A stretch of 63,065 bases of DNA, the filler included, from Octopus bimaculoides (lineage: Eukaryota), in NCBI RefSeq assembly GCF_001194135.2. It is 5 parts of 4 records of this genome, joined end to end, with 100 filler letters (N's around TTAATTAATTAA, not from the genome) between each part and the next. Parts side by side here need not be neighbours in the genome. Positions count along the whole stretch, not along the records: positions 46,805 to 60,068 come from NC_068982.1; 4 more parts are not named here. One strand, 5' to 3'. Within the stretch, counting starts at the first letter, position 1; the number at the start of each line of letters is the position of its first letter. The position numbers and the translations under genes were made by a program. Shown here one piece after another: positions 46,805 to 59,722 of the stretch. Under the pieces are notes generated by a model. The model was not told the DNA's origin. It saw only the letters and a list, made by a program, of their open reading frames with translations, and searched no databases.

Positions 46805-47150
46805 TACACTTTCAGCGCACCTACCGCCACTACTAACTTGGTCACCCAGATAGCGGAAGCTATGAACTACCTCTAGTTTTTCTCCCTGGAATGAGACAGA
46901 AGTTGTTTCCTGTTTGTTTACAGTGTTTATTGCACCTGAACATCTGCCACATACAAAAACTAAATTCCTAGTTAACCTGCCTTTGATATTGCTGCACCTC
47001 TTATGTGTCCATACCTTGCACTGGGTACATCTTATAGAGTTACTACCTACTCCTTTTCTACATATTGAGCAGGGCCATCTACCTGAAGGGGTTTGTGTTT
47101 TATCTACCTTCCTACTTATTTTAGCTAAATCTGATATTCTGGACACTTTA
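46805..47150 (-). mobile_element. RTE-clade LINE ORF2 fragment with C4HC3 PHD finger
   Basis: WPCSICRKGVGSNSIRCTQCKVWTHKRCSNI...FVCGRC followed by EKLEVVHSFRYLGDQVSSGG. Confidence 0.85.
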
Positions 47151-47230: not shown

Positions 47231-48159
47231 GGGTACGAATTTCTTTTTTGTTGATCAGAGTAAATTTCAATACATTTACCCACATGATTTTCACTAAGAA
47301 AATAGCTTAGATTTTTTGCGTGGAATCAAGTGCCCTGACCTCCTAATATGCTGCAGATCCCTTATTTTTGTTCAGAAAAGTGGTTGGGGGTGGGCATCCC
47401 GAATCAATGGAAATTTTTTTTTTTCCGTTGAATGAATTATAATGATCTCCTAATATGCAACAAACCCCAATATTTTGATCCGGGAAACAAAGAAAGTGGG
47501 GGAAGAACCCGCGGAAATTTCACCCCCGCCATTTTCAAATATTCTTTGCTGTGTTTTTCTTTACCCATATTTTTAGATAACATTTCGCAGAAATACATAT
47601 GAGAGATTTGTTTTTCAAATCTATTCTGCAATCTGGAATTATTATATATTATCACGGATATAATTATCCAGTGATTTTAAGAGGTATGAAAAAGATATTT
47701 TGTTTAATATTATACTTTTACTTGTTCCACACACATACACAACTTCTTATGTGTTTTCCTAGATGACTTCTTTATCATTCTTTCTCTCTCCACAGACTTC
47801 GTTACCACTAACTTCTATAACCTCTGCATTTTCACTTATTCTTTTCAGTATTCTTTTCAAACTAGTTTGGATATTCAATCTAATGTAATCCACACTATCT
47901 TGAAAACGTATTTCTGCAATATGTCGTCTAAAATTATGGGTAAAGAAAGAAACAGCAAAAAAATTTGAAAATGGGGTGGGGGTCCGAGGGTTCTCAACAC
48001 TCCCCTCCTCCACCCCGTTTTCCGGACTAAAAAAAAAGGTAATTCATTCAACGGAAAAAAAAAAAATTCCCAATGATTCCGGGATTCCACTTTTTTTCCG
48101 AACAAAAATAAGGGATTTGTGGTTAAAAATATCGAAATTTACCGATTTAAATTCGTCCC
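47231..48159. mobile_element. Non-autonomous element with long imperfect terminal inverted repeats
   Basis: Three colinear inverted blocks: gggtacgaattt..gtaaatttcaatac; atcccttatttttgttcagaaaa; ttttttccgttgaatgaatta. Their reverse complements lie at 48037-48159. Confidence 0.7.
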
Positions 48160-48754
48160 AAAAATGCAGCGAAGACATTTCTGCTTATCATGACCTGCGA
48201 GTTGGGGGTTCTTGTTTATTTAGACTAAAGTCGTTGGTTAGTTGAGTTGATGGTTAGACAACGAGTGAGTTTACGCATACATGAACGGACACACGTATGA
48301 GTGTGTGTGTACACATATGTATGCAGGTATGTGTAGGTACTGGCTGGCATAAGCTTCACAACTAATCTAGGAAGAACAGACTGTAGTCCCACGACTAGTT
48401 TAGTGTTTAAACATGAAAATATATCCGCTGTCTTCCAGTAGTGTAGCTAGAGTGTGTGTCGCCCGAGGTAGCCCCGGAGTTTGCGACTCCACACCACTCA
48501 AAAGTGCTGTCCCTGTAAAAGCGCCGACAGGGACGGACTACCCAACTCTTCTCCACTTTATTTATGAAGTGGACCCTATCGTCGCTAAATTTACTCCGAG
48601 CATTAAACTATTCAGGTTACAAGAATATCTGATTTGTCGAAAGGGTTGTTTTTTCCAAATCCTTTTTTATTTCCCACACTCAATAGGGTTAACACTCACG
48701 CTTGGGGTTATACACCACTCATGCGCGCTCTCGTGTGTAAGTGCGTGTAATACG

Positions 48755-48808
<54 letters not shown>

Positions 48809-49124
48809 GAGAGAGAAGAAGAGAGTTGGTTATAGATTGGCAATGTTTTTGAAAATACCGTTTTAATCTGCTTTTTATTGTATGTCATATTTTTCCCTTT
48901 TTAAATCAAGGAAAGAAAAGACTAGTGATGGTAACGTTAAAATATTCGTGATGGAGAATTTTGCAGCCTTTAGTTTCACTCTTCCATCCTTTTTGTTGAA
49001 ATGCCACTGAGGTTAACATTGCTTTTCATAATTCTAAGTTGATAAAATGATTATCAGTAATATCAATGTGTTACAATTGAAATAATTGTTGGATATTAAA
49101 ACTAAAAAGATAATTTTACAGTAG

Positions 49125-49143
49125 TTTATTTAACTTCTTTATT
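49125..49143 (-). terminator. Two AATAAA polyadenylation signals downstream of the phosphorylase stop
   Basis: Plus-strand tttatt at 49138-49143 and 49125-49130, about 50 and 63 nt past the TGA. The region is AT-rich, so chance is possible. Confidence 0.5.
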
Positions 49144-49192: not shown

Positions 49193-51688
49193 TCAATAGA
49201 ATTTTGTTTGAAGTAAGTCAGCACTCCATATGTGAGCTGCATATTCTTTGATAGCTCGATCACTTGAGAATTTTCCACAACAGGCTATGTTCAACAGGGA
49301 TTTTTTTAGCCATTCTTTAGTATTATTATAAAGATTTTCTACATCATCTTGAGCTCTAATGTAATCTTCATAATCTTCAAGAATCAAATAATGATCGCAG
49401 TGGTATAAACTATCAAAGATTTCTATAAATAGAGTGGGATTGTCAGGACTGAAGTAGCCATCTTTAATCATGTCCATTGCCCTTCTTAACTCATCATTAC
49501 TATGATAATGGCGTGATGCTGTATAACCGGATGATCTCAAATTATTAACCTCTTCAACGCAAAGACCGAAAATAAACATATTTGTTTTTCCAACTTCTTC
49601 AGCTATTTCGACATTGGCACCATCCATTGTACCTATTGTTAATGCCCCATTGGCCATAAATTTCATGTTTCCTGTACCAGAAGCTTCTGTTCCAGCTGTT
49701 GAAATCTGTTCACTAAGATCTGTTGCAGGTATAATTTTCTCAGCCAAAGACACAGAATAATTTTCCAAATAAACTACTTTAAGTTTGTTTCCTATATCAA
49801 CGTCATTGTTGATAACCTTTGCAACATTATTGATAAGCTTTATAATAAGTTTAGCCATCCTGTAGCCGGGAGCAGCTTTACCACCAATTATGACGGTACG
49901 AGGAACAACAAATTTCTTTTCGTATTTAATACGACAGTATTTTGTAACTATATGAAGACAGTTCAGTAGCTGGCGTTTGTATTCGTGTATACGTTTTACA
50001 TGGACATCAAATAACGATGCTATGTTTATATTAATAAGATATTTCTCTTTTATATATTCTGCCATTCTTTTTTTGTGTTCCATTTTGACTTCCATTAAAT
50101 CCCTTAAAATATGGCCATCATGCTCAAATTTTCTAAGGTCTCTTAAATGGCATAACTCTGTTATCCACGCATCTCCAATTCTTCCCGAAATCAAATCTGC
50201 AAGACATGGATTACTCTGAAGTATCCACCGCCTTGGTGATATTCCATTGGTTACATTTTGAAATTTGTGTGGCATCATCTCGTAGAAGTCTTTAAATAGT
50301 TGTTGTTTTAGTAAATTTGAGTGTAATGCGGCTACGCCATTAACTGCATGCGAACCGACTATACACAAGTAAGCCATATTTACTTTTTTGTAAGGCTCTT
50401 CTTCGAATATGGACAGTCTCTTTATTCGATCATCATCATTCGGCCAAATTCTTGCAACTTTTTCTAAATGTAAATGATTGATATGGTAAATAAGCTGCAG
50501 ATGTCTCGGAAGTAATGTTTCCAATAATGTAACTGGCCACCGTTCAAGAGCTTCTGGCATCAATGTGTGGTTTGTATAAGCAAAAACATTGCAACTAATA
50601 TCCCATGCATCATCCCAGTCCATGCATTCATCATCAACAAGTATTCTCATAAGTTCTGGTATTGCCATTCCAGGATGGGTATCATTCAATTGTATTGCTA
50701 CTTTTTCTGGTAATTGATAAAACATGTCTCTTCCCCTTCTTTGTCTTCCATATTTATCAGCTTTGAATCTTCTTATAATATCTTGTAAAGTTGCTGCTAC
50801 TAGAAAATATTCTTGTTTGAGACGCAATTCTTGTCCTTCGAAGAAAGAGTCATTTGGATAAAGAACACTAGAAATATTTTCAGCTAAGTTTCTTTCTATA
50901 ACTGCTCTGATGTAATCTCCGTTATTGAAAAATTGCAGCTGAAATTCTTTGGTACATCTAGCTGACCACAATCGCAGAGTATTTACTCTGTTGTTCTTGT
51001 AGCCAGGAATTGGATAATCATAAGGTGTTGCAATAACATTGTGTGTGTCCAGCCACTGAAAGCGACCTTCTATAACTTCCACTCTTCCTCCAAAACGAAC
51101 GGGAATTCGGTGTTCGGGTCGGGATTTTTCCCATGGGTTCCCGTATTCTAACCATTCATCTGCCGATTCACATTGCCATCCATTGTTGATTTTTTGTGTA
51201 AATATTCCATAATTATAACGAATTCCGTATCCATATCCTGTTACGCCAACTGTAGCCATGGAATCCATATAACAAGCTGCTAATCGACCAAGACCACCAT
51301 TTCCTAATCCTGCCTCCTCTTCTATTTCTATGAGATTGCTCAACTTCAGATTCATTTGTCTCAAAGCTTCTTCGTTAGAATACATATTTCCAAGACATAA
51401 CATGGCATTCTCTAAAAATTTTCCCATATAAAATTCCATAGAAAGATAATAAACCCTTTTTGGATCAGTATCATAATTAAATTGCTGAGTTCTGATCCAA
51501 CGTCCGACAAGTTGATCTTTAACAGAATGGGCTAAGGCTACATAATAATCTCTTCTGGTGGCTACATTTCTATCTTTCATACATGTGAAGTGAAGATGTC
51601 GATTGAAGGATTTTTTAATGTTTTCTGTACTCATCTCGTCTGCCAGCCCTGTCATTCCACACAGTGTAATTTGCTGTTGCAAAGGCAT
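49193..51688 (-). CDS. PYG: Glycogen phosphorylase (GT35, PLP-dependent), metazoan type, intronless, 831 aa
   Basis: Uninterrupted ORF colinear with animal phosphorylases: [57 protein letters not shown] and [11 protein letters not shown] (PLP Lys = K676, nt 49661-49663). ATG context aacATG with an in-frame TAA 15 nt upstream. Confidence 0.98.
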
Positions 51689-51840
51689 GTTGTTGTTTTT
51701 TTACTAAAGTTTTCTATTATACTTTTGTTATTAGAGTTTCTTTTCCTTTAGATTTTGTCTAAACACTCGAAATATGTAGCTCGGTAAAGTCAGGATGTTT
51801 CTTTTTTGATACTTTCAACATGGCTATAAATTACATTGTA

Positions 51841-51848
51841 TTACGTCA
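51841..51848. promoter_or_regulatory. CRE-like element TTACGTCA about 150 bp upstream of the phosphorylase ATG
   Basis: Octamer seen directly; function is inference only. Confidence 0.25.
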
Positions 51849-52169
51849 CTGCACGGGTTTGCATGACCATTTTATGACATAATATTAATGGTGGATATAG
51901 ATTCTGCTTTCTACCTTTATTTAAGCAAACATGTTCAGCTTTCGTTATAATAAAAAAAATAATTAAAGGCTCCACCTCTTCGATTCCTACTTTAAAGTGG
52001 GAAATATAAAATCCTAAGGTATATTATGTGATAATGTCACTTAATCGTATAATTCATCTATACAATAATGATCCAGTTTTCTTTATTTTAGGGTCCAGTG
52101 TAGATTGTTTAGGCAATCAGGATTTTATATGTAATATGACTGTGAATTCAAATTTGCTACTGGCAAATT

Positions 52170-52899: not shown

Positions 52900-53555
52900 C
52901 TTCTTTCCTTTTCATCTGCCACTTGTATTTTTAGCATCAATGCCTCTGAAGATGATATAGTTCGACAATCATCTTAATCTTCTCCTCAATTTATTATTTC
53001 TTTCGTAAACAGGTCTTCGAATTCTGTTTTGTCAGCGTCAAAATACCCACTTCTTCGCATCTTCTATGATGATCGAGTATCGTATAATAGCGGAAAAACA
53101 CATAAACGGTATTCAGATTCAAAATTGACGAATTAGTCAGTGAATTGTGCTTTTGTCGACTCTTCGTTAACCACATCATCTTTATACCTTCAACATTGCA
53201 AAACATCATTGAATTTACGGAACTTTACTGGTAATGGTAAAAATTATTTTCATCCCTTTAACTGAATGTAACCCAGTATAATCCATCTTTGAATAGTGCT
53301 TTTTCGATATTCACCCTATCAACTAAAACAGATTTCACCCAGAGTTACAATACTTCTTTTCTTCTCATCTGCCACTTGTATTCTTAGCATCAATGTCTCT
53401 GAAGATGATACAGTCCGACAAAAACACATAAATGGTGTTCAGATTCAAAATCGACGAATTAGTTAGTAAAATGTGCTTTTGTCGACTCTTCGTTAACCAC
53501 ATCATCTTTATACCTTCAACATTGCAAAACATCATTGAATTTACGGAATTTTAAT
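52900..53555. repeat. Local direct duplication of an ~200-bp segment; the first copy carries an extra ~130 bp
   Basis: tcatctgccacttgtat...catcattgaatttacggaa occurs at about 52912-53222 and 53364-53548. Confidence 0.85.
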
Positions 53556-57149: not shown

Positions 57150-57743
57150 GTGAGACAATCCTAGCCCCCTAAAACATTACAGTAAATGCCATCAACAAAA
57201 ATCTTACAAATGATCTCTGGAGACAGCCATATCTATAAACCTATCGACAAAGTTGTTGACGTGGACGATGCTGTTCATTATCCTGTTGAATTCCTCATCA
57301 GTCTGGAACCGTCCGGTATGCCGCCATACAATCTTGAATTGAAGAAGGGCGCAGTCACCATGCTTCTCAGAATCTTAGATCAGCTAAGATTGTGCAATGT
57401 ACAGGTATGGCTGTAACTGAACTACAGCCTCACATTATCGAAGCAAAAATTCTCACTGAATATGGTAAGGGAGATATCGTATTTATACCTAGAATAGTTA
57501 ATACCAACAGATGTCCCCTTTCATTTCAAACGATTGCAATTCCCAGTGAGAGTCAGTTACGTAATGACCATTAACAAGTCCCAAAATCAAACATTACAGG
57601 TTGTCGGTTTCCACTTTGAAGATGGCTGGTTCTCACATGGTCAATTGTATGTAGGTTGTTCCAGAATAGGAAACCCACAGAAACTCTTCATATATGCTCC
57701 AAAGAAAAAAGTTAAAAACATTGTATATATTGAAGTTCTGTAA
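57150..57743 (+). mobile_element. Helitron PIF1-type helicase C-terminal fragment (frameshifted)
   Basis: ILAP*N, YPVEFLISLEPSGMPP..L.LKKGA..MLLR.LD...LCN, QFPVRVSYVMTINKSQNQTL and FSHGQLYVGCSR...KNIVYIEVL*. Confidence 0.9.
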
Positions 57744-58049: not shown

Positions 58050-59722
58050 TTATTAAGGTTTTCACTGGAACATTCCATCAGTACTCCTTCTTATTCAAAG
58101 TGACTATAGCTTCTATCATACTGTGGGTTCTTTTTTCTTTGGCTTTAAGGTTATCCTTCTGACGGATCTCATTATACAGTGTCTTAGCTACAGCATCATG
58201 TCTCTTCGGTATATAGTGTAGTGATGATATTTTCGGACAACTGCTTATTATGTGGGTGATATCTTCGGTGTTAACTACACAAAGTCTGCCCTGGTTATTA
58301 TATTTTGATATTTTGCCTGCGTCTCTGCTCCTTTTGTGCATCGGGTATTTGGTTGATATTTCCTGTTCCTAGATTGCACCCCCCCCCCTCAAAGTGGGAG
58401 TTAGTAATCCGGTTGTTAGTCCATGATAGACTGCTTTGATGATCAATGTTACTATCATCTCGGAGCTTTCTGCTAACATAGTCGTGCATTGTCTTCTGGT
58501 CATATACGCTCATCCTTTCATCTGATTATATGTTGCGGTAAAATCGTGCGATTTCTTTGAGCAGGTATTTAAGGTTATCAGATAATGAAGGAATGCTGCT
58601 CAAGGAACTGCATTCCAAGACTTATGATGTTATCAGTCTCATGTATGCAAACTTGGTCAAGAGATACACTTTGACACTTGGTGGTTAAAAGATGTTGCCG
58701 AAGGAAAATTCAAAGGCAGTTTGGAACGATGTCAAACCTCTGCCGCCTTGTTTTCGTTTTAGGTAAAGGAGGTCTACTTCACTGTTGATGTGGAAATTAC
58801 ATGTGCTTGTTAGTATCTTCCGGGTTTTCACATCAATGAATCAGATCTCATCAAGCGTCCAATCAAGCAGCTCAAATGTTGGTATGAGTACTGGCACTGC
58901 AGACACATTGTGGGCAACCGTTTTATTGAATGCAGACGTCCAAATTTTCTTTATTCGGCTGTAATATTCTTTAGTGACACATGTTTTACTACAGGTGACA
59001 TTGTAAGGTACGTTTTCATCCACCCCTAGGTACCTGTAACATTCCTCATCAGATATAGGGGAAACAGTTAGGTCATTGATGGAAATGTTGCTTGTCTGGT
59101 TTATAGCTTTCCCTCTTTTCACAACCATATAACAACTTTTATCCTGATCAGACTCCAGCCCTATATCCTTTGAGAATGTTGTAATCATGTCGAGGCTCTT
59201 TTTCATCTCGTGCATATTCTTTGCATATAGTTTTAAGTCATCCACAAAGAAACAGTATGGAATTATGGTATTTCTGTTTCCTTATGAACCAGTGAGATAT
59301 CCTTCAGATTTCCTTAACATGAATGACAAGGGGTTTACAGAAAGTATAAACAACATCACAGAGAGGCTGTCCCCTTGGAGTATGCCTCTACAATACTGTA
59401 TTCTATTAGTGATAATACAGTCATTCCTTGTGTTTAATTTCAAGATGATAAGTCACGATGAAGTCAGATCAGCTATGGCTTTGACTATTCTCACTGGAAC
59501 TTTAGCAAGTTGAAGGGCTTCTAGCATCCATGAGTGGGGAACAGAGTCAAAGGCTTTCTTGTAGTCAAACCACATTGAAATTTGGTTCCTTCTATATTCC
59601 CGCTCCTCTGACATTGCAGTTTTGCTTATTAACAATTACTCAGCACATCCCCAGACTCCCTTCTTCCCAGTTGCTTGTTTTTCTGTGATGATGTTACTGT
59701 ATAGGAAAGTTGGTTATACATC
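58050..59722 (-). mobile_element. R4/Dong-like LINE, RT to knuckle region, decayed
   Basis: WFDYKKAFDSVPHSWMLEAL, VDDLKLYAKN and EDITHIISSCPKISSLHYIPKRHDAVAKTLY; same lineage as 23100-26000. Confidence 0.88.

Follow-up and report, generated by a model that had tools for sequence, protein, structure and literature searches.

Regulation through protein phosphorylation has its founding example in glycogen phosphorylase and the kinase that controls it, phosphorylase kinase. Here, we describe an intron-less glycogen phosphorylase gene of Octopus bimaculoides, referred to below as copy B, which lies on the minus strand at positions 49193-51688 of a 63,065-nucleotide stretch of DNA (the window), made up of five parts of four records of the RefSeq assembly GCF_001194135.2 joined end to end with filler letters. 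Copy B is probably a functional paralogue that is regulated by adenosine monophosphate (AMP) and is no longer recognised by phosphorylase kinase, a reading that is drawn from sequence comparison and that we favour without regarding it as secure. An earlier interpretation of the same DNA, made from the letters of the window (the sequence-only reading), had seen in this gene an isozyme uncoupled from hormonal control and run allosterically or constitutively. Uncoupling at the level of the animal is not borne out, as the canonical phosphorylase gene and a neighbouring paralogue with intact basic motifs are present in the same genome, and constitutive running appears less likely than AMP-dependent activity, given an intact AMP site. 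Copy B is a modest evolutionary variant rather than a system-wide rewiring.

An intact single-exon gene of the phosphorylase family

The open reading frame (ORF) of copy B stays open over 831 codons and closes with a TGA at 49193-49195, and the encoded protein is an exact match to positions 87233835-87236330 of the O. bimaculoides chromosome CM046602.1 (assembly GCA_001194135.2). The profile PF00343 matches it with 1073.3 bits (cut-off 27) over profile positions 1-712 of 713, TIGR02093 matches it with 1161.7 bits (cut-off 552.9), and HMMER aligns it over its full length to the structures of human brain, liver and muscle phosphorylase with 1166-1186 bits, the value for the brain enzyme (5iko) being 1186. 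Judged by these matches, copy B is an unambiguous member of the glycogen phosphorylase family (GT35).

Two further groups of intron-less phosphorylase genes are considered here together with copy B: its head-to-head neighbour, copy A, and a third group, C3, represented by the ENA contig ERZ21867824 and the runs ERR12921340 and ERR12370324. Copies A, B and C3 are each a single unbroken ORF in genomic DNA. The cluster formed with copy B at 90% identity also contains XP_036356236.1 of O. sinensis (“glycogen phosphorylase, brain form-like”), a short O. vulgaris model and a protein of a further octopus species from four sequencing runs; all full-length members of the cluster have an identical 11-residue start. 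The O. vulgaris model (CAI9717427.1, 736 residues, named “muscle form-like isoform X3”) starts at the internal Met96 and is thus devoid of the entire regulatory N-terminus; the annotations of copy B disagree among the three species. The intron-less genes are already present in public annotation as “brain form-like” phosphorylases. In a literature search, no paper was found that connects glycogen phosphorylase to retrogenes or to paralogues in octopus, nor any on the intron-less family, its origin or its degenerate tail.

The regulatory tail has lost its basic residues

The sequence-only reading had stated that the first 24 residues contain no Lys or Arg, and translation of 51617-51688 agrees. 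It had offered two alignments of this tail with the animal motif KRKQISVRG: a gapped one, in which QQQITLCG faces the motif and a three-residue insertion is assumed, and an ungapped one with Gly at the position of Ser14. The gapped alignment stands. In the HMMER alignments with the human brain and liver structures, QQQITLCG is paired with RKQISVRG and a three-residue insertion follows directly; MAFFT and a codon alignment place the inserted Met-Thr-Gly after the equivalent of Gly17, ahead of a conserved Leu-Ala. Thr8 is the equivalent of Ser14, since the paralogues read RRITI[RH]G, and the ungapped alternative is ruled out by HMMER, MAFFT, the codon alignment and the paralogue sequences alike.

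At the codon level, the canonical octopus gene reads CTT CGC AAG CAA ATT ACA ATT CGT GGT and copy B reads TTG CAA CAG CAA ATT ACA CTG TGT GGA. The changes specific to copy B are Arg10 to Gln, Lys11 to Gln, Ile15 to Leu and Arg16 to Cys, in the numbering of the canonical enzyme, and both the codon alignment and the residue table confirm the claimed loss of the flanking basic residues that serve kinase recognition. A single CpG transition separates the Cys codon TGT from CGT, the codon of both the canonical gene and copy A; in C3, this CpG-containing codon has mutated to CAT or CAC (His), independently of the change to Cys in copy B. Comparison of orthologues, which the sequence-only reading had proposed as a check, shows the tail without basic residues to be the same in three octopus species: the Gln-Gln-Cys replacement and the Met-Thr-Gly insertion are identical, and all codon changes within the shared 11-residue start are synonymous. 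Copy B has CAA (Gln12) at codon 6 (window 51671-51673), as the canonical gene does; copy A and C3 have CGT (Arg) there.

The tail was also compared across 228 phosphorylases, about 215 of them canonical. All canonical animal enzymes in this survey carry [KR][KRH][KR]QIS[VI][RK]G or a close variant (about 215 of 215 with flanking basic residues), and among the 228 sequences only copy B and its orthologues have an acceptor without any adjacent basic residue. Thr at position 14 is confined in the survey to the intron-less octopus family, the canonical octopus enzyme (LRKQITIRG) and a canonical enzyme with LKKQITIRG, the cluster of which contains PYG of the cuttlefish Acanthosepion pharaonis. All coleoid phosphorylases examined, canonical ones included, thus have Thr14; the other canonical animal enzymes, about 215, have Ser. 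The animal motif that the sequence-only reading had taken as established is near-invariant in the survey, except that the coleoid canonical enzymes have Thr in it. The replacement of Ser by Thr, which had been counted as a feature of the isozyme, does not hold as such, because the canonical octopus and cuttlefish enzymes also have KQITIRG; by this comparison it is a coleoid-wide change that is older than the retrocopy and is not what sets copy B apart. Outside the coleoids, a divergent “glycogen phosphorylase-like” protein of the spider Uloborus diversus (1153 amino acids) starts with MRERRLTIKD, with Thr at the likely acceptor position and an altered motif, and may represent an independent case in which the switch of a paralogue has been modified.

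The sequence that phosphorylase kinase recognises has a basic residue at P-3 and another at P+2, with hydrophobic residues around the acceptor. Lys11 and Arg16 are reported to be recognition determinants (peptide studies of Graves and co-workers; Lowe et al. 1997). Copy B has Gln at P-3, Cys at P+2 and a changed spacing to helix 1, and is for these reasons expected to be a poor or null substrate of the kinase. In cryo-electron microscopy structures of phosphorylase kinase, a Lys-Gly pseudosubstrate of the enzyme itself fills the -3 and -2 substrate sites (PMC10978961, PMC11950179).

Catalytic and allosteric sites

Functional residues were assigned in rabbit numbering through an 843-residue vertebrate reference with landmark checks. 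Catalytic and pyridoxal phosphate (PLP) positions are unchanged at 29 of 30, the exception being N284S; G134, G135, L136, H377, N484, R569, Y573, K574, E672, T676 and Lys680 are all identical to the canonical enzyme. With the AMP-site residues defined as in the rabbit structures, the AMP/glucose-6-phosphate site is kept (Tyr75, Gln71, Gln72, Arg81, Arg193, Arg242, Arg309, Arg310, Asp42, Asn44, Val45), with peripheral differences at V40M, Y196H and C318R. The purine site (Phe285, Tyr613), the glycogen storage site and the tower helix are kept as well. Copy B is predicted to be active and to respond to AMP because its catalytic, PLP, AMP/glucose-6-phosphate, purine and storage sites are intact.

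The substituted position 284, in the 280s gate loop, is Asn in 13 of 13 canonical enzymes compared and Ala, Ser or Thr throughout the intron-less family: Ser in copy B, Thr in copy B of O. sinensis and Ala in copy A, in C3 and in copy B of the third octopus species. This change may alter stabilisation of the T state or inhibition by glucose family-wide. Copy B also has Ser for Glu120 and Gly for Glu505, which are among the acidic residues that receive the basic tail in rabbit phosphorylase b. Among the features of the kinase-switched subclass that are testable in the sequence, the flanking basic residues (Arg10, Lys11 and Arg16) are those that copy B lacks; the phosphate-receiving arginines are present, and the acceptor Thr does not discriminate.

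The equivalents of Arg43 and Arg69, which are phosphoserine ligands in the rabbit enzyme, remain in copy B, as the sequence-only reading had noted. Their retention in O. bimaculoides and O. sinensis is consistent with a different account, in which covalent control persists: Thr8 would be phosphorylated by a relaxed phosphorylase kinase or by a non-basophilic kinase, and phosphothreonine would dock on Arg40 and Arg66 and activate the enzyme. Within the 11-residue start that is identical in three species, the acceptor Thr8 is preserved along with Ile7, Gln at P-2, a hydrophobic P+1 residue and Gly11, and since all coleoid phosphorylases have Thr, the kinase of the octopus must already be unlike its mammalian counterpart, which prefers Ser. 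However, the basic residues at positions 10, 11 and 16 are all lost, the insertion shifts the spacing to helix 1, and the roughly 215 canonical animal enzymes, copy A and C3 all keep at least two basic residues adjacent to the acceptor, which argues that these are needed; moreover, over 11 codons the identity of three close species is statistically indistinguishable from the gene-wide rate. Persistent covalent control is accordingly regarded as rather unlikely, and loss of recognition by phosphorylase kinase is preferred.

Paralogues and origin of the intron-less family

Copy A corresponds to XP_052834373.1 in O. bimaculoides and to XP_036356237.1 in O. sinensis; its protein starts with MDESAVMKRRITIRG and keeps KRRITIRG. 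It lies on the same chromosome as copy B, head to head with it at a distance of 23.9 kb in O. bimaculoides, and the head-to-head arrangement is kept in O. sinensis, 15.3 kb apart. Copies A and B are 70.5% identical, and the nearest relatives of copy B (A and C3) are 68-70% identical to it. At the nucleotide level, the A and B loci resemble each other only within the coding sequence, and no similarity was found in the flanks. The canonical phosphorylase of O. bimaculoides is XP_014774569.1, and O. vulgaris and O. sinensis have the same protein; it is 78% identical to the abalone enzyme. Its gene is split into at least 16 coding blocks spread over 42 kb and, in three species, is found on a chromosome other than that of the intron-less copies.

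Phylogenetically, copies A, B and C3 belong to a single clade (100% bootstrap) in which A and B are sisters (81.5%), and the branch leading to this clade is about twice the length of any canonical lineage. The family is about 61% identical to every canonical animal enzyme (61-62% for copy B over the whole chain); among molluscs, arthropods and vertebrates, the pairwise identity of canonical enzymes is 70% or more. Among the 228 sequences, the family shares its Leu9 and Thr14 with no others than the canonical enzymes of octopus and cuttlefish, and it has coleoid-specific residues at 5 of 13 positions, compared with 3 of 20 for nine control clades outside the all-mollusc set. These counts lend modest support to cephalopod parentage, which rests on few shared residues and on parsimony because a distance tree does not contain that grouping.

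An intron-less copy of a multi-exon gene at an unlinked locus, as seen here, is a mark of a processed retrogene, and the family most likely began as a retrocopy of the mRNA of a multi-exon cephalopod phosphorylase. The simplest history for the head-to-head A/B pair would be a later local inverted duplication in octopods.

Selection acting on copy B

Copy B is under purifying selection. Between O. bimaculoides and O. sinensis, the ratio of non-synonymous to synonymous rates (dN/dS) is 0.124, with 16.5 non-synonymous and 32.5 synonymous changes (P=1e-11 for the synonymous excess), and the ORF is intact in three species despite saturated synonymous divergence from copy A (dS>2). The ratio rises to 0.26-0.31 for copy B against the third octopus species (runs SRR11869385-94), with P<=1e-11 throughout the copy B range of 0.12-0.31; it is 0.22-0.24 for copy A and 0.05-0.10 for C3. 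In the third species, the ORFs of both copies are intact, with the substitutions H377Q, Y573H, L136I, L139V, D339E and R69K in copy B and H571N, R43K and R309K in copy A, which suggests relaxed constraint or a change of function for both copies in that lineage.

These substitutions bear on another explanation, according to which the change of the tail has no regulatory meaning: copy B would be a redundant retrogene under relaxed constraint, with CpG decay of its Arg codons, on its way to loss or to a non-catalytic role. The roughly twofold faster evolution of the family relative to canonical phosphorylases, the dN/dS of 0.24-0.31 on the longer branches, the plain CpG transition behind R16C with the independent His at the same codon of C3, the replacements H377Q, Y573H, L136I and D339E in copy B and H571N, R43K and R309K in copy A of the third species, and the lack of copy B-like fragments in an N-terminal protein search all fit such decay. 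Nevertheless, the ratio of 0.12 for copy B between O. bimaculoides and O. sinensis is below the 0.24 of copy A, 831 codons have stayed open in three species over a time that saturated dS with respect to copy A, O. bimaculoides and O. sinensis retain, position 284 apart, every catalytic, PLP and AMP-site residue, and the upstream region is conserved across three species. We consider decay without regulatory meaning unlikely and retain the view of copy B as a functional enzyme. Contigs of other samples (SRR11869385-94, ERR12921340, ERR12370324) were considered as transcript evidence and set aside, as their microsatellite or repeat ends and non-coding flanks make them look genomic; a search of the literature for the run accessions gave no paper.

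Start codon and putative flanking regulatory sequence

An in-frame TAA begins 15 nucleotides before the ATG of copy B, as had been claimed, and a TAG TAA pair is found at 51701-51706. The further claim that a longer N-terminus in this exon is excluded holds as to the in-frame stops and the lack of another in-frame ATG; the gene is, however, a single-exon paralogue and not an exon of a spliced gene. In-frame stops lie 12-96 nucleotides before the ATG in 8 of 8 copies examined, with no alternative in-frame ATG, and the start of C3, MS[LM]QRRITIHG, is collinear with that of copy B. No intron is expected inside the tail, because the first coding block of the canonical gene covers approximately residues 1-85. 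With these stops, the collinear starts of the paralogues and conserved promoter-like sequence directly upstream, an upstream exon or a longer N-terminus is very unlikely.

About 260 nucleotides before the ATG of copy B are collinear with a contig of another octopus species, and the 371-column alignment of three species that includes this upstream block has a mean column identity of 90%. Every intron-less copy of the family has an octamer of the cyclic AMP (cAMP) response element (CRE) type 150-260 nucleotides before its ATG: TGACGTAA in copy B and TGACGTCA in copy A and C3. No such octamer was found in the 1 kb before the start codon of the canonical gene. A putative TATA box, TTTATAG, differs in its last base (G/A) in the Logan species. 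Downstream, the first AATAAA after the stop of copy B is also present in the contig of the other species. Copy B looks like a compact, self-contained single-exon unit.

That the genomic reading differs from the protein, through an upstream exon or alternative start or through adenosine-to-inosine (A-to-I) editing of Gln codons 4-6 to Arg, is highly improbable. The shorter O. vulgaris model from Met96 would suit the former. CAA and CAG are turned into Arg codons when the middle A is edited, and coleoids edit their transcripts extensively, which would suit the latter. Against this reading stand the in-frame stops and the lack of another in-frame ATG, the collinear starts of the paralogues, the canonical first exon of about residues 1-85 with no intron to be expected in the tail, the Cys10 codon TGT, which is not editable to Arg, and the absence of unusual RNA structure in the 271-nucleotide region around the start (z=+0.78).

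Proposed course of events and objections to it

The history that we favour would have begun with the retrocopying of a cephalopod phosphorylase mRNA that already carried Thr14. Duplication in octopods would have given the head-to-head copies A, with KRRITIRG, and B, and copy B would then have lost Arg10, Lys11 and Arg16 and gained Met-Thr-Gly after the motif. With its sites intact, it would be active and still responsive to AMP; with Gln at P-3, Cys at P+2 and an altered spacing to helix 1, it would be phosphorylated poorly or not at all by the kinase. Copy B would thus be permanently “b-like”, controlled by AMP, other effectors and transcription, and cAMP would reach it through transcription, by way of the CRE-like promoter site, and not through phosphorylation of the enzyme.

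Several observations weigh against this account. H377Q, Y573H and R69K in the third species imply that copy B is dispensable or changing its function in at least one lineage. The equivalents of Arg43 and Arg69 are kept under selection and would be unneeded if nothing docks on them, which leaves room for phosphorylation of Thr8. When the first 132 residues were used as a protein query for partial transcripts or further orthologues, the matches were distant fragments only, none of them similar to copy B. The Gln12 codon of copy B conflicts with the sister grouping of A and B; reversal, a wrong branching order or gene conversion are possible causes. In the distance tree, the family does not group with the canonical enzymes of cephalopods (6% bootstrap), probably owing to the long branch. 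Finally, the sequence downstream of the stop shows neither a poly(A) remnant nor a target-site duplication, as would be expected for a very old insertion (dS>2 between the copies).

A broader proposal can be put forward only tentatively, and we doubt it more than we credit it. Coleoids may possess an old, undescribed family of intron-less phosphorylases with CRE-type promoters, in which the motif was kept (copy A, KRRITIRG), weakened (C3, QRRITIHG) or erased (copy B); in that case, copy B would be the first demonstrated example of an animal phosphorylase that escaped covalent a/b control with AMP control kept, the cAMP input having moved to the promoter. A rarer twist would be a conditional return of the basic residues through A-to-I editing of the three Gln codons.

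Comparison with other phosphorylases and with retrogenes

Compared with the canonical enzymes (rabbit and human PYGM, PYGB and PYGL; octopus XP_014774569.1), copy B has the same fold and length and a homologous tail of the type Ile-Thr/Ser-hydrophobic-x-Gly, but it has no basic residues at 9-11 and 16, three additional residues after Gly17, Ser in place of Asn284, a single exon and an approximately twofold rate of evolution. Copy A resembles copy B in being intron-less and in its Thr14, its Ala/Ser at position 284 and its CRE-type promoter site; it differs in having Lys-Arg-Arg before and Arg after the acceptor and no three-residue insertion. In our reading, KRRITIRG of copy A also fits the protein kinase A consensus R-R-x-T-hydrophobic.

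Competent alpha-glucan phosphorylases without a Ser14-type switch include MalP and GlgP of Escherichia coli, the starch phosphorylases of plants and yeast Gph1, which uses a different N-terminal site. These enzymes have no animal tail or a non-homologous extension, and mostly no AMP site. Unlike them, copy B keeps the tail, the phosphate-binding arginines and the AMP site, so that it would represent a secondary loss within the animal family, predicted by analogy to act like the phosphorylases that are free of kinase control. PGK2 and PDHA2 of mammals are functional retrogenes of metabolic enzymes. Copy B is like these two genes in being an intron-less copy on another chromosome, under purifying selection and with a compact putative promoter of its own; unlike them, it is very old, with saturated synonymous divergence between the copies, and has since been duplicated.

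The series from the canonical enzyme through copy A and C3 to copy B amounts to natural mutagenesis, from which it could be learned which residues of the tail serve recognition and which serve the T-to-R transition. Thr at the coleoid switch predicts a matching, Thr-tolerant change in the phosphorylase kinase of cephalopods. The practical weight of the loss is limited, since the canonical enzyme and the motif-bearing copy A remain.

Features of the locus and surrounding sequence

The coordinates of copy B and its elements are collected in Table 1.

Table 1. Positions in the window of copy B, its functional codons and its flanking elements
Feature	Positions	Strand	Basis
Copy B coding sequence, 831 amino acids + TGA, single exon	49193..51688	-	ORF translation, chromosome match
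Degenerate regulatory tail, codons 1-24, no Lys/Arg	51617..51688	-	translation, HMMER, MAFFT, codon alignment
Gln-Gln-Gln, codons 4-6 (CAA CAG CAA), at the positions of Arg10-Lys11-Gln12	51671..51679	-	codon alignment, residue table
Thr8 codon ACA, equivalent of Ser14	51665..51667	-	alignments, survey
Cys10 codon TGT at the position of Arg16	51659..51661	-	codon alignment
Insertion ATG ACA GGG (Met-Thr-Gly) between the Gly17 and Leu18 equivalents, copy B only	51647..51655	-	HMMER, MAFFT, codon alignment
Arg40, equivalent of Arg43, retained	51569..51571	-	residue table
Arg66, equivalent of Arg69, retained	51491..51493	-	residue table
Ser281 at the position of Asn284, 280s gate loop	50846..50848	-	residue table
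Lys676, equivalent of Lys680 (pyridoxal phosphate Schiff base), in EASGTGNMK	49661..49663	-	residue table
In-frame TAG TAA upstream of the start	51701..51706	-	translation
Conserved upstream block, likely promoter and 5' untranslated region	51689..51946	-	three-species alignment
CRE-like octamer TGACGTAA, 160 nucleotides before the ATG	51841..51848	-	motif match in conserved block
TATA-like TTTATAG, about 10 nucleotides 3' of the CRE-like site	51824..51830	-	three-species conserved block
Two AATAAA polyadenylation-signal matches, 50-70 nucleotides past the stop	49125..49143	-	sequence match

Downstream of copy B, approximately 1 kb of the window (47977-49040) has no counterpart in the contig of the other octopus, the alignment of which jumps from 49041 to 47976; this segment, which contains a long (CA/TG)n microsatellite at 48740-48810, is probably an insertion in O. 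bimaculoides. Fragments of mobile elements flank copy B at 46805-47146 (minus strand), 57186-57743 (plus strand) and 58841-59635 (minus strand), and comprise a PHD-finger ORF cut by the edge of the piece, pieces of a Pif1-type helicase (Helitron-like) and reverse-transcriptase fragments; the RVT_1 matches in these flanks are below the Pfam cut-off. Between copies B and A, a 134-bp direct repeat is present in two copies (53094-53227 and 53420-53553) that are 94.8% identical and about 330 bp apart.

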